Made by a program: the position numbers and the translations under genes. Below are positions 1,693 through 47,600 of a stretch of 64,000 nt of DNA, in pieces. A model generated the notes under the pieces. It made no database searches, was not told where the DNA came from, and saw only the letters and a list, made by a program, of their open reading frames with translations. Source of the DNA: Lytechinus pictus (taxonomy: Eukaryota); assembly GCF_037042905.1 (NCBI RefSeq), contig NC_087260.1:23436001-23500000 (forward strand), in the 5' to 3' direction. Position 1 is the stretch's first letter, and every line of letters begins with the position of its first letter.

Positions 1693-3660
1693 TCATGATT
1701 TTCCAGTTCTAGGAGGTTTTTGATGAACGTATTTTCATCATCAGAAAAGATGGAAGGAACATCTCCTCCGTAGGTGTCTCGGCAGATCTTTCTCGAATCT
1801 TCCACTATGGCATTTTTCTCTGGATGGACGTGGTAGCAGAACCCGGTATGTGGACTCAGGGAGCCTGAAGAGCAAAATGTTCCGCCTAGAATAAAAAAAA
1901 ATCAAGAATTACACAAAAGTTATTAGGGGTTTCTTTTTGGGAGGGGGCTGCTCGCGTGTGACGTCACAAATTAAATAATCTTTTTTTTTAAATCATATGT
2001 CGTTTGATATTTTATTGATGTTCATCAAACCTTCGCCAAATATGATCTCTACTTATATTATTTAAATTGACTAATCGTCAAAAGTGTGATATTTCCCTTT
2101 AAACCTGGTAGATTCCATGTACTATTCAAGACACACACCTGGCTGAAAATATCATGATTAGAAAAAAATCAGACAAACGAAACACTGAAAACTCCTACAG
2201 GGCTCTGTACAATCGGACAATGAATAACAAAGTAATGACATATAGAGCATTCTATTGTTTCTATGCACGGATGTCTTCATAAATTATTCAAAGTCATATC
2301 CCTACATATTCTTTTGTATTTTCTTTAATGTAATTATTAAAAAATTTGCACACCAAGCATGAAAAAATGACAGCTTATTTAACATTAAGATAATCATTGC
2401 TGCAACTTTTTTTTCCAAGTGAGGTAAATCATTTATTCATTTATTTTTTTTATCTATCTATCTATTTATCTAGCTATCTATTTATTCATTTATTTCACAA
2501 ATTAAAAAAGAGTAGACCAATCAGCGCAAACTTTTGTATTCTATTAGGGCACTTTAAAAAATACAATGCAAATATACAGATATATACAAAGAGAGTAGAC
2601 TTCAACTAGATAATTATGTATACAATAGATTTATTAAAAATGTTACAGAATAGAATATGTCTTTATTATTTATTTATTTGTTTATTTATTCATTTTATTT
2701 ATTTATCTATCTATCTATTTATTTCACATACACGTATGAAAAATATAAAATGATTATGATATCATGCAAAAACATGAAAAAGGAAGGGATGGACATCAGT
2801 CATCAGCCCGCCAAATGGAACTTTGGGTCGGCGGCATGTACATGTAACTGTTTAAAAAAAATAATGCTAAAGTTTAAAATGTAATTACTTCTTTAAATTT
2901 TCACCGTTTTGCTTGATGAATTATATATATTAATCTAGGCAAAATTATTTTAGCCCAGAGTATGCAGCTTGTTGTAAACTTTAAAAAGACTTTGTTAAAA
3001 AACAAAATTTCTTTGCATACTTCTTATATTCAAATTGACTTGTATATATAGACCCTAGATCATTTTTTAAACCACCATTGGATTGTTTTCAATGTAATAA
3101 ATTTATCCACACACATTTTAAAACAATCTCGGAACAAAATATGTTTTCAACATATTTTGTTCCGAGATTCTGTGTGGAGAAATTTATTACATTGAAAACA
3201 ATATAATGGTGGCTTAAAGATGAACTAGGGTCTACAAGTCAATTTATATAAAAAGTATGTAAACAAATTGTTGTCAGTTTAGTCATATTTATTAAAGAAA
3301 AAAGGATATTCGTTACCATGAGCTCTGCATGTACATTCTTGATGAGAAATTAGATGCTTATTTTCCACAGCAGCCTCTTCCATTTCTGAAGTCATATTTG
3401 TTTTATCATGTATGACAGTTCTCTCTCCCTCTCTTTTCTTTCTTTCTTTCTTTCTCACTTTTTCCAATTCTCCCCCTATTTTATCGCGCCTTTGGCATTT
3501 TCTTTTTTTCTTTTTTGCAAAGTGGAAATGGCGCTATTATACTAACATTATTATTGTCATAAAATAAAGACTAGATGCAAATAGTCATGTACTTACTGAC
3601 ATTCTTGTTGGTTAAAATTGCTCCCCAAATGAGAATAGTGATACACGCAATTGCTCTCAT
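1693..3660 (-). CDS. Secreted C-type lectin domain protein, 5' part (continues left, probably out of the window)
   Basis: Exon 3660-3597 encodes MRAIACITILIWGAILTNKNV (signal-peptide-like) and ends in a phase-1 GTAAGT donor. Exon 1885-1693 has a TTTTTTTATTCTAG acceptor and a GTATGC donor and continues in frame: SGTFCSSGSLSPHTGFCYHVHPEKNAIVEDSRKICRDTYGGDVPSIFSDDENTFIKNLL. This matches the CTLD N-terminal pattern C..G...CY...C...GG.L.SI.S..EN.FI. Confidence 0.75.
3001..3272. repeat. Foldback / long palindrome (degenerate MITE)
   Basis: The arms pair around ~3146, e.g. AATCTCGGAACAAAATATGTT / AACATATTTTGTTCCGAGATT and TAGACCCTAG / CTAGGGTCTA. Confidence 0.7.
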
Positions 3661-4278
3661 CTTCTTTTCCGATGATTCTTACTCAAATTAAATGATCTTC
3701 ATTGCTTGATACTAAACGATGTAGAGCAAAGATTAAATTGATGTCCATTCTCTTTGTGGTTGTGAGTTGAATAATGAACATCCTTTTCCATCGTTTAGCT
3801 CACTCGCATATCCCATCATGACCCTGTATCACAAAAGTTTGTGATCAATAGCAACTTGGAAGTAATTCTTCTGGTTGGTTTTCGGTTTGCCGAAGAGATC
3901 TTGATTAGCCATTCCTATTTTATGATAAATCGAGAGAGAGAAAAATATTGTGTAACATGACCCTGATATTCGCATCGGAGTATAATGAAATTTGTTTCGA
4001 TTGTGTTGTTATGGCGACAGGGTAAACATAATGGATTTATTGCAAAATTGCGACGAAAGATCGAAGTGAATAGATCGAAGAAACATTGATTAACCTTCCA
4101 GATAATAGCAATAACTGTGAAAAGCCGAATCCATGGCTTATGGAAAGAGCTAAGGAAACGTAAAGAAATGAAGTCTAAGGGGTTGAAAAGATTTTGGCAA
4201 AAGAAAATGGAAAATTAATCTATCAGTACACATCTAAAAGGAAGATATAGCCTAAGTTTCCTGAAAATGGTTGTTGAT

Positions 4279-4427
4279 NNNNNNNNNNNNNNNNNNNNNN
4301 NNNNNNNNNNNNNNNNNNNNNNNNNNNNNNNNNNNNNNNNNNNNNNNNNNNNNNNNNNNNNNNNNNNNNNNNNNNNNNNNNNNNNNNNNNNNNNNNNNNN
4401 NNNNNNNNNNNNNNNNNNNNNNNNNNN
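4279..4427. other. Assembly gap (N run)
   Basis: N characters. Confidence 1.
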
Positions 4428-25045: not shown

Positions 25046-25553
25046 NNNNNNNNNNNNNNNNNNNNNNNNNNNNNNNNNNNNNNNNNNNNNNNNNNNNNNN
25101 NNNNNNNNNNNNNNNNNNNNNNNNNNNNNNNNNNNNNNNNNNNNNNNNNNNNNNNNNNNNNNNNNNNNNNNNNNNNNNNNNNNNNNNNNNNNNNNNNNNN
25201 NNNNNNNNNNNNNNNNNNNNNNNNNNNNNNNNNNNNNNNNNNNNNNNNNNNNNNNNNNNNNNNNNNNNNNNNNNNNNNNNNNNNNNNNNNNNNNNNNNNN
25301 NNNNNNNNNNNNNNNNNNNNNNNNNNNNNNNNNNNNNNNNNNNNNNNNNNNNNNNNNNNNNNNNNNNNNNNNNNNNNNNNNNNNNNNNNNNNNNNNNNNN
25401 NNNNNNNNNNNNNNNNNNNNNNNNNNNNNNNNNNNNNNNNNNNNNNNNNNNNNNNNNNNNNNNNNNNNNNNNNNNNNNNNNNNNNNNNNNNNNNNNNNNN
25501 NNNNNNNNNNNNNNNNNNNNNNNNNNNNNNNNNNNNNNNNNNNNNNNNNNNNN
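25046..25553. other. Assembly gap (N run) within a GAT repeat
   Basis: N characters. Confidence 1.
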
Positions 25554-33004: not shown

Positions 33005-36000
33005 TATGGTGATGTGGATCCCTGTACAGTGTACTCTGGTAACTGGAGAAAAAAAACGTTTGGTGTAGTGTACATGCAGATTCTATTTTAAATCAGGCTG
33101 CTTTTCTTTTTTTTAAGTAAATTTATTTATTTTATTTGATTGTAACTTTTATTTAAATCTACACTGATTGTACAGCCAAGTGCCAAGACCTATTGATTGG
33201 CCTTGGATATTGATGTAAAAATGTGTCCTCTAGAAAATGGCTTTGTCCTAAAAATGTTGAAGTTTAAAGCCCGCTGGAACACAACAAAAGTACACAGTGA
33301 ACGTAGGCATGACAGGCACAGACATCTTTGTAAAGCTTTGCAGTGCTTGTTCACTAAGGTTTGGTGTTTGGTGTAGGGCTGCAGTGATGAAAATATGTTT
33401 AGTGTGAACAGACCCAGTAATGTATGAAAATGAAAAATGTAAATCAAGTTTACATGTCAAATCTCTCATAGGAATATCCTGGTGTGCCAGATATAAGCGC
33501 TTTGTGTACATTTCTAGCATACCAACTGTTTGGACCTCCATCACATTCGGCCAATCGCAAGGCAAAGATCAACTCCCCTCGAACTCTGATAGTAGTCTGG
33601 CATTTCTGACTAGATGAAGGTTTCACAGATATTTTTCGCTCGTTGGCACATAAAGGGTAGGGGGAGTTAATGACAAGTCTACCCCAACAAAGAGTCGATT
33701 TGAAGAAAAAGAGACAAATCCAAAACGCTAAACACTGAAAATTTGATCAAAATCTGATGTTAAGTAAGAAAGAGCACATTTTTAAGTTTCGCTTCGTTTC
33801 GTAAAATAGTTGTATGCACTTTTTCCTAGAAATTTACATTGGTGCTGTCTGTTGTTGACCAGACATTTACACACACCACGATAATGCTTCAGGTTGCTAT
33901 AAGGTTCCTTGTCCAGATTCCATGTGTTTGTTGTAAATGTCATGTAATTCCTATCACTCTAGTCTGACATTGGTAGACTATCTCACCAAGGGAACAAGCA
34001 CCAGGAGGCAAAAATAGCAAAAAGGTATTGAGGCCAAGACTACCAGGAATAGACTCTCCTCTTACTTTCCCCTCTGGTCCTAAAACCTACAGCCGTCTAC
34101 CGGTCCCTCTCATCCATGATTGGTCCAGTCCGCCCCTCTGGAGGAGTAGAAGAAATCTTATACCAAGGCGGGGTGTTTGCTTGCATCATCATCGGCATCA
34201 ATACCGGTCCTGAGAGTCTGTCTCCATTACACAAAAGACGCTAGCTGGTTACCAATACTAGCATCACTACATCCTCTCTGCTACCACTGGCCGAACTCGC
34301 TCCCTGGTATGTCGCAGCATGGACCCTCTTGCCATTGGTACTGATGTACTGGTATAACCGTCTGCTATATGTGATTTGTGTTGGACTGTGATAATTCACA
34401 AGTGCAGTATGGATCATTCTCCATCTATTCAAGGAATGCACTAGATTTGGTGGATTTTGCATCTTTGTTTAATACATATGAAGGATTCCCACATTAAGTG
34501 GCATTTTTCAGGAACCTTTACTCTGGATTATACGGATTTACAGTATCAGAGCTCATCCATTACTCAATAAAGTTGGCATCTATTGTCTTTGGATCTACCT
34601 GTCTTTCTGGCTTGCAAGCATCTTGCGTTTATTTTGATAATCACATGGTATATTGTCACTGCAGATCTTACTGTACCATATGTCTTTGTCTTTGTCTTTG
34701 AAACAAAGATCAGTCTGCATTTGACATCTCTGAGTCAAAAAGACATGGAAGGATAATGAAATTTTCCTTTGCACTTCTTTTTAATTTCTCTGCCATTTTT
34801 GCTAAAATGTTTCATTTCAAAACATTTACCTCCAAACTCCAAAGTAAATGTATGCCTTTACATTTAATATTACCAATGTTTGAATGCTCTTTGGGCTTTT
34901 TGTAATGCTAGGTTTGAAGGGCGAACCTCTTGTTTATAGTGATATGAGCATTTAAATTCATTCTGACTGAGCGATAGCACACCTGTGTACAGGTGGATAC
35001 CCCAGGCTCCTTTTGTTATTTCATATGATTCTGTATATTTACCTTCAAGATTGAAGTAAAAGAGATTTGTGGCCCTCTTTCCAGATCTACATTGCTTTAT
35101 GTGCTTCTTTGTGGGAATATTTATTGGACATTTTAATTCAATGCTTTTCGCTGCAAGACAGTAATACTTGGCAAGATATCTGAACATGGCCTCTGGTGTG
35201 ATGATAGATGTTGACCCATTATACCAAGATAATTAATCTCATCATCTCAATGCCTTCCAGCCAGGGCTCAATAGATTAGGCTGGATGATTGAGTATTGCC
35301 AATCTATGGAATGCTATAGGTAGCACTCTTCTGCTATCGTATGAAGGGTTCATTGTCAAATTGATGTCTTCATTAGACACACTAAGCAACTGATAGCATA
35401 CCTTGAACTAACTTTGAATTGAAACCTTTAATCTCATCTTCATGATGTGGAAGAATGATGACTGTGTCAAATTAAAAGGGCCATTAGAGCCCATTTGAAG
35501 ACAAAATTAAGATTGGAGCCTAAATTTTAATATTAACAGATATTTGTTTGCACTACACTTCCCCATTTGTGCCAAATTGTCTCAATTTGTTCTCAATTAA
35601 TTTGTATTTTACTTATTAGGGCTCACTCAGAGCTTGATAAAACACAAAAGCAAAAGACCCTTGAAAGCATATTTGCATCTGGTATGTTGAATGGAATATA
35701 ACGCATCTTGCATCTTTCATAGCTGGTTCTCTTTTCATTTTTGAAGTTGATATGTTGCACTGAACATGGTCAAGCTCTGATGCTATCACCCCCATCGGCT
35801 ATCCCTTTGATGTCTGTTTGGTAATCTCAGAGATAACATTAATCTATACAAGTGTACCAAAACCCCCTCTAGTATGCCATTATCAGCTTTACAGTGTAGC
35901 AGTTATCTGTTATTGATTGTTGATATAGGACTTGCTGCAAGGCTGTGATGGTGTTCAGATGCACCAAGAGGGACATTCTGAAAAGCGGTTTGAAAAGATT

Positions 36001-36448
36001 TTGTTTGAAATCAATGTTATTTAGGAAGTTGATAAACAGCTTTCTTTACTTGGTCCATTCATTGGTACTGAGTGAAGGTTGGTAAGTATACTCAAGAGGT
36101 CTACATGTACCTTTCAAATATTGGAGCAGTGCTCTTTCCTTAATACTAAGTCCTACTTTTGACAGTTTATATGCATGTCCAATACATAGGCCTACATGCT
36201 TCCTTGATATCTCTTCATGAACACTTAGTATAAAGTTTATTTCAGAAAGCTTTATGCGAATGCAATGTGATAGTTTCTAATATTAAAAAAAATCTTGTTT
36301 TATGGAATGGGTAGTATCCCACCGCTGCCACAAAATCTATAAAAGAAAGAAAAACTTTGGGTTTTGGAGGCAAATTGAACACTTAACCTAATCCAGCATG
36401 AAAAATATACCCAGCTAATAAGTGGACAATCATATTTTATTTACTTAT

Positions 36449-36825
36449 TTCCATTTCGTCTAATGCCAAATTCGTCCAATTGCCAACTTTTCTACTATCA
36501 TTTGGTCTACCATCAGTTTGTCCACTTTCCACATGGTTTAATTGCCATTTTGTCCAATCACTCCAATGGCAATTTAGTCTAATAAACAGTTGATCCAATA
36601 GCCATTTAGTCCATATACCATTTGGTCTAAATGGACTAAGTGTTAATTACAAGTGCAAAATGAATGACAATGAAATTAGTCAACTGGTTATGAGACGAAA
36701 TGGTCATAGACTAATGGTGATTAGACAAGGTGATGATCGGACCAAGTGGTTATTGGACCAAAATCACCAAATGGTTGTTAGACGAAATGTTGATGGACGG
36801 AATGGCATTAGCATGAATGGAATTA
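36449..36825. repeat. Foldback repeat built of 15-16-bp units (TAGACCAAATGG-like), split by the Harbinger and resuming at 46662-46712
   Basis: CCATTTGGTCTA units on the left arm and TAGACnAAnTGG units on the right arm. Related remnants at ~12890-13040 and ~15620-15940. Confidence 0.75.
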
Positions 36826-37133
36826 GACCCCTGTTACACATGCGTCGGCTTTCAAAGCCGGCCCCGGAGGCGGCCTCACGCCTGCAATTTGAAGCCGCCT
36901 CAAAATCATCAAACCCCTGTTACACATAGTCTCGGGCCCGCAATTTTGCGTCTACACATAGGCCGGCCTCACGTCGCCTTTTCACGAGCTGACGTTGGGG
37001 CGCACTTCATGTAAACAAACGCTTAATATTTTCGCGCGGTTTGCAGGTCTTTTTAATTGCATTGGATCTCATCGACATCGCGACCGATCCGTACACATAT
37101 CTTACCTCCATATTTTGTTTATATAATTGCATT

Positions 37134-38981
37134 ATGAAGGTTAAGAATATCGTAACTATTATTTCTGATCGAAGGAGGGAATTTCGACGTGCTCAAAAAA
37201 GGCGATTCCGGGAGTTTGAAGCACGTCGTCGGCGAGTACGGTACTATTTTTTGTTATGTGCTATAACGTTTGCCTGCACCGTGGAAAGGAGTGTGTGGAT
37301 GAAGGAGCGATCTGGACATTTCTGGGAGAGGATAGTGGAAGGGAGATTCACGGCAAGAGATTTTCGTGAAAATTTCCGTGTGAACAAGTCGACATTTGAT
37401 TTTCTGTGTGGTGAGCTAGCACCGGCTATTCGTCGCCAAAACACACGATGGCGTAAAGCAGTTTGTGTCAGAAAGAGAGTTGCCATAACTCTGTGGCGTT
37501 TATCCACAAACTGCGAGTATCGAACAATCGGGCATCTTTTTGGGGTAGCGAGATGTACCGCCAATGTCATCGTCAACGACACCTGCCTTGTAATTGTACA
37601 AGAACTAATGAGAAGATATATTACCTTTCCTTCTGGAGATAGATTACGGGCAACTGTTCAGGGGTTCGAGGACATGGGGTTTCCCCAAGTTGCAGGTGCC
37701 ATTGATGGAACCCATATCCCTATAATTGGACCTGTTAATTACCATGCTGATTATCATAATCGAAAGGGATGGTACTCTGTCATTCTCCAGGCAGTTTGTG
37801 ACCATAAGTACATGTTCACAGATATCATGGTAGGATGGCCAGGACGCTGCCACGATGCCCGGGTGCTGGCAAACTCTTCTTTTCACCGAAGAGCGGAAAA
37901 TGGAGAACTGCTTCCAAATGTACGTTTACTTTTAAATCTAATTTATAAAACTTGAATTAAATTTCATTTTATTATTAAAGATTTAAGCCACAAAAGATTA
38001 TGATAGACTACAATCATTTAAAATCTCATAGATCTACAAGTCAATAGTAACATGCACATTTCATTTTTTTAAAGGGATAATATAAACAAAGGATTTAAAA
38101 CAATAAATAAACCTAGAGAAATCAAGCCTAGAATAAGGGTAGATCTTCTTTTAAAATTTCATAAGTAATAATAGGCTACCATTAGTTTGCTCCACCTATT
38201 CATCTAAAAACACTGAGGTTTGTGTGATTTTGATATTTCATCAGCAGGGCCATAGCCAGTGTTTGATGTTTGGGGGGCACATACATGTAATTGATCAACG
38301 TCCTGGGGAGGGGTCTATAAGGATGGGTGTGTGATCTTGGGGGGGGGGGGGGGCACGTGCCCCCCCCCCCCCTGGCTACGGGCCTGCATGTTCATCAGCA
38401 TGATCAATGTGTATTTTAATGAATTAATTTTAATATATATTTTTCTAAACATCTTCATGATATTAAAATAGACCTCTACTTAGTATTGATGTTATTAATA
38501 TTATTAAATGATTATATTTCATTATTATCATTTTCAATACATTGTTTTTGACCAGATGACAAGAAACATCAATGGCCAAGATGTTCCGCTGATGATACTT
38601 GGGGACCCTGCCTACCCACTGCTGCCATGGCTAATGAAAGGTTTTGCCGATAATGGTCGTCTGACTGAAGATCAGACTAACTTTAACTACAGGCTCAGCA
38701 GGGCGAGAATGGTCATCGAAGGTAGTTTTGGTAGACTGAAGGGGCGATGGAGATGCTTATTGAAGCGCAATGACAGCGCTCTTGAGAACGTAACTAATAT
38801 TGTTGGAGCGTGTTGTACCTTGCATAACCTTTGTCAGATGCAGTCCGATGAGCCAGATGACGAGTGGCTTGATGTTGCTCATGAATTACGAGAGTTTCAG
38901 CCACCTTGTCCTTTGCCAAATCAAAGGCCTGCACCATCAGCATCTGTAGTGCGTGATGCTCTTGTTCAGTATGTTAGGTAA
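37134..38981 (+). CDS. PIF/Harbinger DDE transposase (HARBI1-like, DDE_Tnp_4), 2 exons, ~403 aa
   Basis: Exons 37134-37919 (AAT|GTACGT) and 38556-38981 (TTTTGACCAG|ATG), phase 0. Motifs: [24 protein letters not shown] (HTH region), [68 protein letters not shown]. No internal stops. The start codon is inferred. Confidence 0.93.
38245..38386. mobile_element. Small hAT-like MITE nested in the transposase intron
   Basis: CAGGGCCATAGCCAG...CTGGCTACGGGCCTG. TTCATCAG at 38237-38244 and again at 38391-38398 after 4 extra bases. Confidence 0.65.
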
Positions 38982-40502
38982 CTTTTTTTATGCATTTCTT
39001 CAACCACTGTTAATGATATTCCACAGGTGTAAACAGAGCCTCAAATGAACTCATTCATTCGGTTAGTCAATGACCCCCCCCCCCCCCCCCAACCCCCGCC
39101 CTCATGATTGAAAATGTTATGTAGCCTCTGTTTTGTAATGTAAAACAGTTATCAAGAATAGAGTTTTCTCTCTTGGACATTTCTCTTTGTTTTTCCTTTT
39201 TAATTATTAATTTATGTTAATCATTCATAATAGACTATTGAGAAAATGCAAATCTGTTATTTTTTTATAATCCATTTTAAAGTAGATGGTTGGCCTTTTT
39301 GTAATGAATAATCTTTTTTTTTTTTAATAATATGCTTTTATTTCACCAAGTCATTTGTTTCATATTTTACTATACAGAGTGATGAAAAAGTAGTAAATTT
39401 AAGGTAGGCCTATGGCAGATAAGATTATCAGGGCCAGAAGATTGTCAATTAATTAGAATGATTTTTTTTTCTTCTTTGTATCAGTCTCTTTCCCAATCCA
39501 TGGATACAGTAAGACTGGGTTTATGTTATTGTCAACCATAGCTGGGGGCTTTAGGTATGCATAGCAGAGGTTAATGTATGCACTGACATAGCAATGCATC
39601 TGACCAGTAGCATAGCACACTGCAATCTTCTTTTCATCTTGTGTTTCTTCCCTGTTATGACTGACATAAGTTTAAGTGTTTTAAAACCGAATATTCAAAT
39701 TCAAATTCATTTGCCTATATGATCTACAAGTGATGAACACATTTTAACCATCTTATCCTGTGCCCATTCAAAAGCCAGTTTTGTGTTATGTTATTTCATT
39801 TGAGGTAAAATGCAGTTGTATTGTTATTTTTTCAAGCAAATATAGTGCCAGAAGCATTATTTTTTTTCTTGTTGTCCATGTGACTTTCTTGCTATTTCAT
39901 CAATGCGATAATTTATATCAATCATTAATCTTAAAAGATGCACTTTAAACTTGACACCAGCATGCCTCATCATGGGAAGATGAATTAATTTTGTTTAGGG
40001 TTATGTAGGTCAAAGGACACAGAGGTTAATACACATGAAACATTACCTATTTGTAGTTCTTTTATCATAATATCTTGTACTATTTGCTTCTTGTATTCAA
40101 TGTGCTAACAAGTATTCATTTGGAGAGGAATTTCAAACAAAGGTTACAGAGGTAAATGTATAATGTATATAAAACAATACCAGATAAACATGATTTATCT
40201 TCAAACCCATGTGGATAAGTAGTAATTGCTTGGGGGCAGGCGCAAGTGGTCATTATCTCTTTAGCTATGTGATTATATTGGATTGTATTCAACCACTATG
40301 AAATAGCTGTTTTGTACATATATGTCGTTTTTTCTTCTCTAACCACTTTTAGTTCAAAATTGTTAGGTATTTTCTGTGTATATGTTAAATACAACATGCC
40401 TCCGATAATGAATAAAAAGAAGAAAAAACATCAAGAATTCAGCTAAGGGTCTATCCTATTATTTCTGTATTATAACACTCTAAAAGCAAACCAATCTAAA
40501 TT

Positions 40503-40627
40503 GGAATCAAATGGGGACATATTTGTTTCTATTCTTATTTAGAATAGATTCTATTCATCTTTTTCCTTCAGATTCTCTTCAATTCTGAGAATTTGAATAG
40601 AAACTAATATGTCCCCATTTGATTCCT
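40503..40627. repeat. Inverted repeat between the convergent 3' ends of the two Harbinger genes
   Basis: GGAATCAAATGGGGACATATT.GTTTCTATTC pairs with GAATAGAAAC.AATATGTCCCCATTTGATTCC. Confidence 0.75.
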
Positions 40628-41692
40628 ATTCATATTTGATTAGTTTGTTTAGAAAACACATTAAGTACATGTCAGTGGCAGACACAGAAATCTTGGGGGG
40701 GGGGGGGGGGTACCCCAGGTGTTATAGTTTGTCTTGTTGATGTCCATTTTTTTCTGGGGGGGGGGGGGGCTGGAACATGTATCATTGTCCATTTAACATT
40801 GTAGAATCAAAAGGTAATATTTTTTATTTAAAAAAAATTTAAACAAATTATGAAGTATAAAGATACAGAATTTAAACAAAAAGTTTCATAGTACATGTAC
40901 CAAAAAGGCAATTTAGGTCACTATATTACAACATTATTTTGACTGACATGGGGTGTAATATAGAATTTTGTTGGGCCTGTAAATGCTTAAATATTCCAAG
41001 AGGGACTATTTTTCTGCAAAGCATGTAGTGTTTGGAAAATGTGATGTTTTCCAAAGAGGAGAAATTAATACCCGAGATGCCAAGATATGTTATCTTTCAA
41101 CTCTTGCAAGATGACATATGGCACCTCTATTATTATATTCTCTTAGGATTAAATCACACTTTCCTTGACTCTATAAGCTTTGCAAATACATGTATATATA
41201 AGATAGTCTTTTTTGTTAAAGAGCCGATTTGCTTTGAACGATCAAAATAACATCCATATTTTGTTTGCATTGTTTCGCAAATCCCCATGAAAAGCATGCT
41301 CAGCCAATCATTTGACTGGATCTAGGTAGACAATGTATTAACAGAGGTAAAGGTATAGGGTTAGGTCACACATGCAATCAGGCAAGAAGACTGGAAATAT
41401 ACCAAACAAATTATTTATTATTCAGAGAATAATGAACACGTACATAAAAAGTAAAACATAAAAGTGCAATATTTGCATAATGCATTCACAAAGTGCAATT
41501 TTCTTTACATAGTAACTGAAAAGTTATAAAATATACCACAATTATGTCCTGAGTTTAAATTAGTTGGCACTATCGAAAGGCAGACTTTGGTAACGTTTTA
41601 TTGCCAATATACAGTTTCTTTCTTAATAAATACAAAGAAAAGGGGGGAAAAGTTTTTGAAAAGTACTGCAAATGCAATGATGACAAACAAAA

Positions 41693-42660
41693 ATGTAGAC
41701 ATGTGTGATAAAATAGCAAATAGACTTTGAAACTTTGTGTGAATGCATATGTATATAACCCATCTTATACATGTAATTGCAAGATAACAAGTACTGACAA
41801 AAACAAACAGTTAAAAAATATAATACTTTACACTTTCAAGTTGTGACTCAACTTTCTTTGGCAATATCACATTGGTACAAAATGAGGGTTGGCAGCGTTT
41901 GATATAGATCTTATTTAAGAACAATAAAACATAGTCATTTGAAAGGTATGTATATAATAGAAGATCAAAATAAAAATGGAATGTTTATATATATATACTG
42001 TATATGTACAAAAGTTCACATGTAGAAATGTGTGCTTAAATAGCAAACAGACTTTGTAACTTTGTGTGAATGCATATACCTGTTTTATACATGTACAGAA
42101 ATTGCAAGATAACAAGTACTAACAAAAAGAGCAGTTAAAAAATATAATACTTTACACTTTCAAGTTGTGACTCAACTTTCTTTGGCAATATCAAATTGGT
42201 ACAAAATGAGGGCTGGCAGCATTTGATATAGATCTTATTTAAGAACAATAAAACAGTCATTCGAAAAGGTATGTATATAATAGAAGACAAAATAAAAATG
42301 GAATGTTTATATATACTGTAGATGTACAAAAGTTCACATGTAGAAATGTGTGCTTAAATAGCAAATAGACTTTGTAACTTTGTGTGAATGCATATGTATA
42401 TAACCTGTTTTATACATGTACAGTAATTGCAAGATAACAGGTACTGACAAAAATGAGCAGTAAAAAGATATAATACTTTACACTTTCAAGTTGTGACTCA
42501 ACTTTCTTTGGCAATATCAAATTGGTACAAAATGAGGGTTGGCAGCGGTTGATATAGATCTTATTTAAGAACAACAATAAAACATAGTCCATTCAAAAGT
42601 TATGCATAGAATAGAAGAAAAAATAAAAATGAATGTTTATATACAGATGTACAAAAGTTC
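41693..42660. repeat. Three tandem ~320-bp units in the putative 3'UTR of the Myb-like gene
   Basis: Units start at ~41693, ~42020 and ~42338. Each contains TACTTTACACTTTCAAGTTGTGACTCAACTTTCTTTGGCAATATCA. Confidence 0.9.
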
Positions 42661-43020
42661 CAATAGCAAGTAAATGGTTACTTGATGTAAAAAAGAACTA
42701 CATAAAAACAAAGTTATATGTTTATAAAAATCTATAAGTGCTAAGAACAAAAAGTACTAACATCTACAATTTACATGTAAATTCCCTTGCCCTTGGCAAT
42801 GATTCTGGCAGCACTGAGATGGATGGCTAAGTAAAAACAAGGGTTTCAGCATGGCAAGAGTACAGGTGAATGATATGCAGCAACAAGTACTGAGGAAAGA
42901 AATTGTGATGAACAAAAATCCTGAAAAGTGTCATCTCATATGACAAATACATGTTTACCACCGTGGGAATTCCAAACACACACACTCCTCCACTTGAAGA
43001 ATGCATTATGTTTGTAACAA

Positions 43021-44676
43021 TTACAGTGGAGTGTAATCGTGATTGTAGGGCCAGGAATTTGGAGACCGCTCTGGACCGGACTGGGAGTTGTTTCCCTGTT
43101 GCTGCCACATTGAAGTTGACGACTGCCGCATACCAGCCATTAAGGCCTGAAGCATTTGGAGTTGATGCTGTCTATCACGTTCTTTTTCTTGCTCTCTATG
43201 CTCCCTCTCTTCTCTTCTCCTCCTCTCCTTCTCCTCTAGTTTTTTTTCTTCAGTACGCTGTGCCTTCATTAGGAGCTCACGCTCCCACTCCATTTGGCGC
43301 TGCATGAACCGATCCTCCCTAGCATTGAAGGCATTTGTACTGTCCTCCTCCAGTGTCTTTATCTCCTTGGCTATCAGTCCGAAGGACTCCTGCAGCTTTG
43401 ATTTCTTCCGCTTTTCCCCTGTTATGAAGTAGGTAGTATAAAATACATCGTAAATAAAAAAAAATCAATCAAATGTGATAGCGGTAAGAAAGGTATACAA
43501 TCATTTTATTTCTTTCAACTTGTTACACACATACTTTTCTGTATTTGACATAAGGCATGCAATATCACACTTCTAATAGCTAATACAACAAATCAAGTGA
43601 GAAAACCTTGAGTTGCAAAAAAAAATCATACTGCATGAAAGCAACATCAACGGGATGTAAAAGGCCCCTTTTCTTGAAAATTTGCTGAATCGAATTCAAA
43701 TATCATATGAACTATAAATAAGCAAATGTATGGAAACAATCTGTTTATATTACCAGTTGCCTTACGTCCATTAGCAGATGATGTTGAAGGTCCCTCTAGA
43801 TCCTCCGGTGGAAAATTGCCAACTAAAGAAAATGAGGGATAGAAAAGCGATTACAATAAGTGACTACAATAATAAACATTTCATTTTTATGCATAAAATG
43901 AAGGGGAACTAATTTTTATGTTGTTATGTGTCACTGAAGTAAAAACATTTTAAAACAAAGGCTAACTTTCAATACATTTTTATTTTATTAAATTCAAATC
44001 AGTTCCTTTCATATTACTCAGTATAAAATGATACATCAAGACAATATAATGATACCAATAATGTTTATTTTAAATGCTCACACTGAGAGGGTAAGAGCCA
44101 AAAAGGATTAGTCTTTATAATTACACATGTATATACAAATAAACATGTATATGTGATTACAAATGAAAAAAGGAAGAGGAATCCTTTACCCAATTCTGTT
44201 GGTGCTTCCACATCATTTTCCTCCAGTTCATCATCCGTTATACTTCTATCTTCTTCGGCTCCATCCTCCTCCTCCTCTCTCGGCAGTGAATCAGAGTCCA
44301 CCGAGTCTAGCGACTCAGATTGATCCTCCTCCTCTGGTTGCGACGCCAGAATGGCAACTGGTGCAGTCTCTGGTCTGCCCCCAAAGATCTCCTGCAGTTC
44401 GCTATAGAATTTACATGTAATTCTCCCCCTGCCTGATCGATTGTTATTGTCCTCCGTCTTTCGGAAGGACGCTCTTAGTTGTTTAATTTTCCGCTTGATT
44501 TGGTCCTCTGCCCTTTCGAACCCCCTTTCTTTCATCAATTGGCATATCTTACGAAATACCGTTTTGTTCCTTACTGTGCCATCCATCTGTTCTTGAATGT
44601 TTTTCTCCCGCCAAATATTCAGGAGGCACAGCGTCTCCACATCTTCCCACAGACTCCCTCTCCCTGTTGGTGCCAT
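43021..44676 (-). CDS. Harbinger Myb/SANT-like (trihelix, Myb_DNA-bind_4-like) DNA-binding protein, 3 coding exons, ~317 aa
   Basis: Exons 44676-44190, 43822-43754 and 43418-43021 (GT-AG, phase 1/1, 954 nt). N-terminal WEDVETLCLLNIW...RNKTVFRKI...GFERAEDQIKRKIKQL...CKFYSELQEIFG, then an acidic linker, KRKKSK (NLS-like) and an E/R-rich coiled coil. An acceptor sits just upstream of the ATG (exon starts at 44682); a probable non-coding exon has its donor at 46352. Confidence 0.9.
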
Positions 44677-47600
44677 TTTGATCTAAAATGAGAGAACAAA
44701 TACAAATACAAATTAATAATGGTAACCACAAAGATTACGATGTGGTAAAATTATTATATAAAATTATGTGTAACATCTATTAATCACCTTTTAGGATTTT
44801 TGATCTTGTCAACAACTTCTCTTGTCAGGGGACAGTTGACATGAATATCATCAAAAATTCAAATTTAATGATTCAGATTGATCGACCACCTAGATATATG
44901 AAGGCCCTTCTCCCCCTGCTATGTAACATTTGATGATCGATGGACAAATTATTCCGCTAAAGTTCCATATGTACCCATCACTAAAATTGAATAAAACAAT
45001 TGAAAAATATGGGTATGACTTAGAATGACATAACTAATATAAATAAAGTATACAAAATATGGGAAATCACTTTCTAAAATAACTATCTAGAAATCCATAT
45101 AGTATACAAAATATGGGAAATAATATTCTAAAAATCTATCAAGTCCATCAAGATAAACTCCTACAGCTCGGCAACTAACACGTGGCCAGCCGCTGATCTC
45201 TGAATACCGGTGGAAGAAGAACTTATTCATACTTTATTTACAAGTTTCTTTTGTTATCATATCACGTGTTAATCTGTTAATGTATACAATTTTTAATACA
45301 ATTTGCTTCTAGTGATAATTTTAGAGACGGTTTAATGATCATTTAGAGATGGTAGGCCTAGAGTGTTAATTATAGAGACAGTTAATACTATAATAGTAAG
45401 GTACGCAGAGTCTGTTACAGCTAGGGTTAGGGTTCGCAGACCCCGGCGTCCATCCTAGAGTACGCGGCCTCCTGATGACTTTGGTTGGTTAGGGATAGGA
45501 CTTCGAAGTTAGAGTTGTGTATATTATTGTACTGTAATCTGTATTAACATTGTTTTATGCACTCACCGCTAGAATCTACTTATTTTAGTCTACTTCTTTT
45601 TTGTGGGGATTTTACAGGCAGACACTATTTTATATGTAGATCTAGACCCTACTCATTTGTTTCAATGTCTAGCGACATATTTCATGTCCAATTTCTGACT
45701 ATGTGCGACTCCGACTGAGTGGATTATTGGCATTTGAAATAATTAATGGCAATTGTCTAGTTTCATGTCTCATGGCCTGGCCTGCCCCTGGCCATGCCTT
45801 CAAAATCAAAGTTAAATACTTCATCAAGTTCATGCCTCATGATCATGATGACTTTGTTTGAGGCATAAGATGATGTATTAACTCTGACAGTCTGACTCCG
45901 AGTCTGATGATGATGAGTCATAATTTCATAATCATATGAGAAAAATTATGACGGCTCATGATGTATGGCACTCCTGTCCAGGCTATTGTTTTTAGTCTGT
46001 CTATTAGTATTGATAAATTATCATCGCCAACAAAAAAATAATGATCATTCTTCAGATGGTGCAATCACAGTAGCGATGTATTTAAAAACATCGAAATAAA
46101 CAGGAAATGATCAGACGATCGAAAATCATAATTCCCAAACCCACAGAAATATAGGGATGGGACTGAATTACAAGTCACCATCACTCATCAGTTCTGTTCG
46201 GAGAAAATACCAGGAATAAACGGTTTAAACTTTTAGCCCACCAGTACAGAATATGTCGTGTCTTAGTGCAGGCTGCTGGATATGAGGAAATTAAAATTTA
46301 AAGCAATAAATGATGAAAAACAATGTAATTTTACGCTCGGGGCGAGGCTTACCTATAATATATACTGCATGCCTGGTCCAAATGGCAAAAGCGCGCCCGG
46401 CCGATGCATTGTTGATGATGACAGGTCGCGTCACTTCCGCTTATAAGCCGGCGCCGAGTCCACTTTGGTGTTACACCTACCGATTGCGGGACTGAGTCCG
46501 GACTCGGGCCGGCCTCAAACCACATCCAGAGGTGGACTGAGTCCACCTGGCCTCAGTCCGGCCTCAGTCCGGCTTTTCAAAAAAAGTTGATGTTACACAT
46601 ACGTCGAGCCGCCTCCGGGGCCGGCCTCAGTCCACTTGCAAACGTATGTGTAACAGGGGTCTAAGACCATTTGGTGAGTGGACGAGTTGGCAGTAGACAA
46701 ATTGGCAATTCACAACCATTGGCTTGATGTGAACCAGGGACAGAAATCTTGGAAAAACATGGTTTAATTTTAGGTTAGAACACACACCCATACACTGATA
46801 CAGTATGTATTACCATGCGTTACTTGGGGTGTGTCTACATTTGTCAGATCTGTCAGTGACACTGGGGGGCTTTATTTCTATCTGGAGGTGATGAATATGG
46901 CCATGTTATTGACCTGCAGAAATATTTCTTTAGGGAAAACTTCATAACTGCTTCTTGTTGAGATGTTTGTGGTTCACAATCTCCTACTATTATGGTACTA
47001 TTTTGAAGTACATGTTGGCATTGTGTATGTGTCAGGGATACTTCTAAGGATGTTCTTGAAAGGTTATTGCTCTACTGGGACCAGAGAAAGTCTTCAAAAG
47101 TTATATTTCCTTGCTTGCCCAAAATCACAAAGATACATAAAATGTGGCTATCATAGCCTACATGTATGTGTACAGTGAGGCACATAACTTTGACAACCAT
47201 ATATATGCCTGTATTATGCCTACTATTCCCTGTGTCATTCCTTACTACATTGGATAGGGTCCATGATTTGATCCAGCAGTAGGATTACACTCTTGGATTA
47301 TCTGCACATTCAGGTCTTCTCTGCAGTTTAAAATCACAGTAGGACAATGAAGGGTTATCTGCATCTCTTTTGAAATATCGTTTTGGAATCTGTATTATGA
47401 ATTAAATCAAGTTTTGATTTGTTTGAAAGAGTGACTCGTTGAAGTAAATACAGCTAGAGGACATTCTTCTACTAGAATGGTGAAGGTGATTGGTTTGTCA
47501 GTTCTTGATAATTGCAATAATCTTCAAAAGCTGGATATTTACATTGATCTTGTATCTTAAAGTCTTTATACCTGCCTGTTTTGGATGATTTCATAAATGA

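Follow-up and report, generated by a model that had tools for sequence, protein, structure and literature searches.

Whether the two-gene DNA transposon found in a 64-kb stretch of Lytechinus pictus DNA (the window; all element coordinates are positions within it) belongs to a family that has been moving through the genome of this sea urchin, or owes its preservation to some other cause, is the question raised by this locus. The element (36826-46661, 9,836 bp) is complete, with both of its genes intact, and belongs to the PIF/Harbinger superfamily by its DDE transposase, its Myb partner, its short terminal inverted repeats (TIRs) and its 3-bp TWA-type target-site duplications. Members of this superfamily require both proteins and excise precisely, as is known for Ping/Pong (PMC2836001). 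The element is very probably one copy of a very young, autonomous, cut-and-paste family of L. pictus; judging from its sequence, the family transposed very recently, and the window copy lacks nothing that such a move is known to require.

Copy number, identity and age

Assembly GCA_037042905.1 contains 13 places that encode the exact product of the Myb gene (P0121) and one more, a 14th, marked by a variant differing at two residues (P0128). Eleven copies of the at least 14 loci were read, among them the window's own (L010, CM073241.1), which is identical through the flanks. The other ten fetched copies lie on different chromosomes or at different positions, and each is full length, with different flanks and its own flanking triplets. 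Compared with 10 loci by megablast, the window element gave 99.75-100% identity over 9.84 kb, ending exactly at the TIRs. An alignment of 10 copies (approximately 98 kb in total) contains nine substitution columns, all of them singletons, three of which stand next to one another at the edge of a G run in a single copy. Neither coding sequence contains any of them, and the window copy has no private substitution; beyond these, the copies differ in G/C homopolymer length and by three small indels. The eleventh copy (L014) has three substitutions and one unit fewer of an internal 324-bp repeat. The level of difference is thus about 7 in 98 kb (about 7e-5 per site), or at most about one substitution per copy, in a star-like pattern, which places the burst in the extremely recent past on any plausible mutation rate. 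The suggestion of an earlier note on this DNA, made from the window alone, that the copy is young and potentially mobile is strongly supported by these at least 14 loci and by 11 full-length, effectively identical copies.

Structural differences among copies were observed in the internal repeats: an 11-bp deletion in L009 at 46549-46573, and the missing 324-bp unit of L014 at 41693-42660. Such differences in repeat units indicate slippage or unequal exchange since the burst.

A collapsed or duplicated assembly would also yield long, near-identical repeats, and segmental duplication or artefact might be proposed as the origin of the copies instead of transposition. This origin is very improbable, given that similarity ends exactly at the TIRs in all copies, that the flanks are unrelated and on different chromosomes, each copy with its own 3-bp duplication, and that the copies differ among themselves by private singletons. 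Contigs assembled from independent sequencing runs also break exactly at the end of the element: one contig of run X1 begins at 36826, the first base of the TIR, and in run X9 a DNA contig begins at 36825. Breaks of this kind arise in an assembly graph where one element meets different neighbours, so they are an independent sign of many flanks. Different flanks and separate triplets for each copy, with perfect duplications at 7 of 11, argue for transposition and not duplication.

HARBI1 and NAIF1 are a co-domesticated PIF/Harbinger pair. Co-domestication of such pairs has occurred repeatedly (PMC9710019), and retention by the host of a transposase/Myb pair that is old, fixed or domesticated would be another way to account for two intact genes. 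It is scarcely credible here, in view of intact TIRs and duplications, at least 14 dispersed identical copies and the lack of a conserved host position; a single fixed copy, in particular, is ruled out by copies on different chromosomes with their own target-site duplications.

Target sites and discordant duplications

The window copy is flanked by the following triplets.

36823-36825, no strand: left flanking triplet TTA, a target-site duplication that does not match the right-hand one
46662-46664, no strand: right flanking triplet TAA, target-site duplication, forming a TWA pair that differs at the centre base

Perfect 3-bp duplications flank 7 of the 11 copies (TAA four times, TTA, ATA and TAT). 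The other four are discordant: TTA/TAA (the window copy), TAA/TTA, TAA/TCA and TAT/ATA. Besides the window copy these are L004, L005 and L009; the centre base alone differs in three of the four, and L009 is shifted. In the surrounding target context, C stands at -1 in 9/11 sites and G at +1 in 6/11; further out, W occupies -2 in 10/11 and +2 in 11/11. This WC-TWA-GW pattern, seen at 11 sites, is suggestive of the extended palindromic target preference described for PIF and mPing (PMC2836001).

At the rate of difference found elsewhere in the element (about 7e-5 per site), point mutation cannot explain three to four changes in 66 flanking bases. In Pong/mPing, the flanking TWA travels with the excised element (PMC11254759), and the discordant triplets, judged from 11 sites, would fit such carry-over of the donor TWA: the donor overhang would pair with a target triplet that has a different centre, and the mismatch would be resolved independently at each end.

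Two other readings of the duplication were considered and rejected. A 2-bp TA duplication with A...T element ends breaks copies that are perfect under the 3-bp reading. A 7-bp duplication TWAGACC at the window copy is contradicted by the right-hand GACC, which belongs to a satellite in the flank, other monomers of which cross the insertion point.

Architecture of the element

The ends and non-coding features of the window copy are as follows.

36826-36845, + strand: left TIR, 20 nt, matching the right TIR at 19/20
46642-46661, - strand: right TIR, 20 nt, matching the left TIR at 19/20
36846-37010, + strand: left subterminal region, with a second copy of the TIR core at 36912 and CGGCCTCA at 36871 and 36964
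46500-46641, + strand: right subterminal region, with CGGCCTCA at 46510, 46559 and 46622, an 11-nt repeat (x2.3) at 46549-46573 and an extra GTTACACAT at 46592
38247-38386, no strand: nested small repeat in the transposase intron, resembling a miniature inverted-repeat transposable element (MITE), 140 nt, with 13-nt inverted ends and a G15-CACGTG-C13 core
41693-42660, no strand: internal tandem repeat of period 324, about three units, in the presumed 3' untranslated region (UTR) of the Myb gene, with one unit fewer in copy L014

The TIRs are as they had been described, with 36826-36845 set against 46642-46661. Their sole mismatch, G at 36842 against A in the right TIR, recurs in the ends of 11/11 copies and is thus a feature of the family, not decay. 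Within the 64-kb window the 16-nt core of the TIR is confined to the two ends and a single further copy at the subterminal position 36912 (86 nt inside the left end), against 0.06 occurrences expected by chance. CGGCCTCA occurs five times in the terminal 300 bp and is absent from the interior of the element. These repeated subterminal motifs are candidate binding sites for the Myb protein.

Coding sequence occupies 2,166 nt (22%) of the 9.8-kb element, and the description of it as mostly non-coding is accurate; the label 'unusually long', in contrast, goes beyond the evidence. The non-coding part comprises the 5' leader (at least 308 nt), the transposase 3' UTR (1.4 kb), three introns, some 2 kb lying upstream of the Myb start codon, the three-unit 324-bp repeat and the nested small repeat. 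The nested repeat (38247-38386) is present in all copies, and its depth is very high in all four runs; G/C-run pieces related to it lie at 39071-39093 and 40690-40770, with homopolymer lengths that differ among copies. The 324-bp array, the nested repeat and the long non-coding parts are common to all copies and so belong to the master sequence of the family.

No second copy or fragment of the element was found elsewhere in the 64-kb window, and an Rfam search of 36000-47500 gave no match. Runs of N occupy 4279-4427 and 25046-25553 of the window. The flanks (36297-36825 and from 46665 onward) consist of degenerate short-period satellite in which 16-nt units were detected; this satellite is very abundant in the runs of organisms A and B, with RNA reads on both strands. 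In other monomers of the satellite, reads and contigs pass from the left flank directly into sequence like that of the right flank (loose ends at 36811), from which it follows that the two flanks were contiguous before the insertion.

The transposase gene

The transposase gene lies on the + strand and comprises two coding exons.

37030-37037, + strand: E2F-like site TTTCGCGC, 97 nt before the transposase ATG
37134-37919, + strand: coding part of exon 1, 262 codons from the ATG at 37134, with the DUF8040/HTH region, the first half of DDE_Tnp_4, D191 (IDGTH) and D241 (HDARV)
37920-38555, + strand: intron, 636 nt, GT..AG, removed in a spliced contig of run X1
38556-38981, + strand: coding part of exon 2, 141 codons and the stop, with the second half of DDE_Tnp_4, GDPAY and the catalytic E (VIE)
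38982-40420, + strand: 3' UTR, with its only AATAAA at 40411-40416

The product totals 403 codons over the two exons, and the catalytic D, D and E are all intact. The Pfam domain DDE_Tnp_4 is split over two open reading frames (ORFs), with profile positions 1-69 in one (E 7.6e-14) and 76-158 in the other (E 4.7e-19); the stop-free spliced transposase that had been predicted, with IDGTH, HDARV, GDPAY and VIE, is present in full, the two domain halves lying on the two exons. When the exons were aligned separately to a crinoid relative of 444 aa (P0004), exon 1 ended at residue 299 and residue 3 of exon 2 aligned at residue 302, so that the exons abut and nothing is missing at the junction. No E2F-type site was found upstream of the Myb gene.

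A word search identified the closest transposases outside L. pictus as 84-88% identical (ENA and Logan contigs), followed by those of Diadema (67%) and Antedon (57%), and the search with exon 1 gave no relative above 88%. The ratio of nonsynonymous to synonymous substitution (dN/dS) of exon 1 against relatives that are 87% identical in DNA is 0.22, as would be expected for a lineage that lived by transposing. The three closest outside relatives (L001-L003) were rejected as a guide to the ends of the family; their similarity is confined to exon 1 (87% DNA identity), and they carry a stop. In one of them (L001, an ENA contig, 1838-3914) the relative of exon 1 is present twice, together with a tandem array of approximately 122-bp period that has been called as a string of 41-aa ORFs.

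An exact look-up of the window's exon ORFs in a collection of 15 billion proteins gave no match; gene callers did not record genomic ORFs of the kind that run into introns. No solved structure matched transposase exon 1. The NCBI annotation of L. pictus represents the transposase only by a 193-aa fragment and an 893-aa chimera in which Ax_dynein_light is joined to DDE_Tnp_4. These NCBI models (L007, 15697-21656, and L013, 15697-16998) thus treat a transposon gene as part of a host gene or as a fragment, and for the odd L. pictus gene models P0123 and P0127 no gene record was found in the contig collection.

The Myb/trihelix partner gene

The partner gene is encoded on the - strand, convergent with the transposase gene, in three exons.

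44190-44676, - strand: exon 1, with the Myb_DNA-bind_4 (trihelix-like) domain and an acidic stretch
43754-43822, - strand: exon 2, 69 nt, matching the NCBI protein
43021-43418, - strand: exon 3, with a coiled-coil, a charged tail and the stop

The introns are of 367 and 335 nt; both end in AG, intron 2 begins with GT, and the donor GT of intron 1 is at 44189-44188. The three exon pieces, translated separately, equal the 317-aa NCBI protein P0121 (XP_054760858.2 and others) residue for residue, in agreement with the stop-free, convergent three-exon Myb/trihelix gene proposed earlier. NCBI names this product "trichohyalin-like [Lytechinus pictus]". Its Myb_DNA-bind_4 domain was recognized by Pfam (E 4.2e-18), and exon 1 matches the plant GT-1 trihelix structures (PDB 2ebi, 2jmw) weakly over residues 7-91 (E 8e-4), a similarity that is only distant and in line with the Pfam assignment.

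The polyadenylation signals previously listed for the two genes (AATAAA at 40411 on the + strand, and at 41414 and 41597 on the - strand) are present, and a further one on the - strand is at 40823-40828. A contig of run X1 (depth 39) extends from 40701 to beyond 41650, past both 41414 and 41597; with a third signal available at 40823-40828, the 3' end of the Myb gene could lie further on.

By analogy with Ping/Pong/mPing and the reconstructed Harbinger3_DR, the Myb protein would bind the repeated subterminal motifs and recruit the transposase, which, from what is known of the superfamily, would cut at the border of TIR and TWA and insert the element elsewhere.

Expression and possible present mobility

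Reads and contigs were aligned to 35700-41650; runs X1 and X22 derive from organism A and run X10 from organism C. X1 yielded a contig of 1,628 nt in which 36826-37919 is joined to 38556-39089 with no differences, at depth 27, and its depth over the unique part of the intron (38088-38286) is zero. X1 therefore behaves as RNA, from which the transposase intron has been removed exactly as predicted. Immediately past the sole AATAAA of the transposase 3' region (40411), at about 40418, the depth of the X1 contigs drops from 66 to 3.7. X1 holds 0.88 of the sampled words of the element, and about 0.87 remains once the three introns are removed, which is a weak check of consistency. Runs of several studies hold 61-88% of the element's words. 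X22 (raw, stranded, rRNA-depleted RNA, of which 6% was read) has reads over 36894-39679 at depth 2-9, with the first mate almost only on the - strand; in most stranded libraries this corresponds to + sense, so the X22 RNA would be in the sense of the transposase.

A very recent burst of a family that is now silent, with copies still intact for want of time to decay and movement blocked by host silencing, is an alternative reading. The low RNA depth in X22 (2-9), the one run of raw reads, with no spliced read, is on the side of such silence. On the other side are the X1 contigs, one covering the full transposase coding sequence in spliced form (depth 27) and others covering the Myb 3' region (depth 39), the absence of any coding change in 10 copies, and the presence of 61-88% of the element's words in runs of several studies; the poor NCBI annotation of the transposase is neutral. 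Silence of this kind is on balance unlikely, though to be taken seriously.

Several points weigh against the reading of the element as a member of a young, autonomous family capable of further movement. The reads over 35700-41650, where the flank satellite hides empty alleles, gave no sign of presence/absence polymorphism, new insertion or excision. The library type of X1 is unrecorded, and the run is taken for RNA only by its spliced contig. X22 contains no spliced read, and its depth in the intron is about that of exon 1, so that part of this RNA is unspliced. The three introns proposed in the earlier note are supported unequally: that of the transposase by the spliced X1 contig, and those of the Myb gene by the NCBI gene model and the sequence, not by reads. 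The comparison covers 11 of the at least 14 copies. Finally, host silencing (e.g. by piRNA) could already have stopped the family.

MITEs and the organism C run

In a small sample of 280 kb of L. pictus DNA, no sequence with at most three mismatches to the 16-nt TIR core was found apart from the full-length copies, and some 160 kb of other L. pictus DNA yielded no element with these TIRs; the proposal that the element could drive MITEs accordingly found no support there.

Run X10 has an unusual profile. A relative of the left 180 bp of the element (36830-37006), set apart by about six fixed differences, reaches a summed contig depth of nearly 100,000, pieces 100% identical to the element cover 37012-38920 at depth 60-190, and the 3' non-coding part is covered at depth 3-16. 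The flank satellite abundant in organisms A and B is nearly missing from this run. The source of X10 is probably another species, and its pieces could reflect a MITE-like burst, horizontal transfer, close kinship or contamination.

A more far-reaching interpretation, tentative and more doubtful than the recent origin of the family, would have the family transposing now in L. pictus, its copies recording the mechanism in vivo. The discordant triplets would then be the footprint of a seamless, piggyBac-like reaction that carries the donor TWA, and X10 might record a recent horizontal transfer with a burst of MITEs. Only engineered mPing/Pong, in plants, has so far been found to carry over the donor TWA (PMC11254759).

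Comparison with known systems

The naturally active Ping/Pong system of rice (with mPing) resembles the L. pictus element in its Myb-like ORF1 and DDE transposase, short TIRs and 3-bp TWA duplications, and perhaps also in an extended palindromic target preference, as the 11 sites suggest. In contrast to Ping/Pong, the L. pictus element resides in an animal host, its genes are convergent, both of them contain introns, and its length is 9.8 kb versus about 5 kb; no abundant MITE partner was seen in the L. pictus DNA sample, and the element is a candidate for mobility where Ping/Pong is naturally active.

The best-studied active PIF/Harbinger members are found in plants, and the vertebrate reference element is a reconstruction: Harbinger3_DR of zebrafish was rebuilt from dead copies. 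It belongs to the same kind of two-protein animal system, whereas the L. pictus copies are naturally intact. Animal Harbingers that are intact by nature, combine both genes in one element and exist in many identical copies are rare.

Sea-urchin Harbingers are already known (PMC8437027). Those of Strongylocentrotus purpuratus and Hemicentrotus pulcherrimus, and Harbinger-Snek of the sea krait, described in the same work, are likened to the L. pictus element by description only, as echinoid or marine, young, multi-copy elements with a transposase as well as a Myb-like protein, both genes being transcribed. Active animal members of PIF/Harbinger are few; one, Harbinger-1M_cIno, has been described in the nematode Caenorhabditis inopinata (bioRxiv 10.64898/2026.05.26.728016). 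Like the L. pictus element, it is an animal system whose DDE transposase depends on a DNA-binding partner, but in C. inopinata the two functions are on separate elements, with just one intact transposase locus, whereas every L. pictus copy read has its two genes intact side by side.

For the annotation of L. pictus, the 'trichohyalin-like' gene models are transposon genes. The family is a good candidate for an animal Harbinger with natural activity, its host sea urchin is open to rearing and genetic manipulation, and a transgenesis vector might be derived from the family. As such it would offer a natural system for the study of two-protein transposition in an animal and for the measurement of ongoing insertional mutation.

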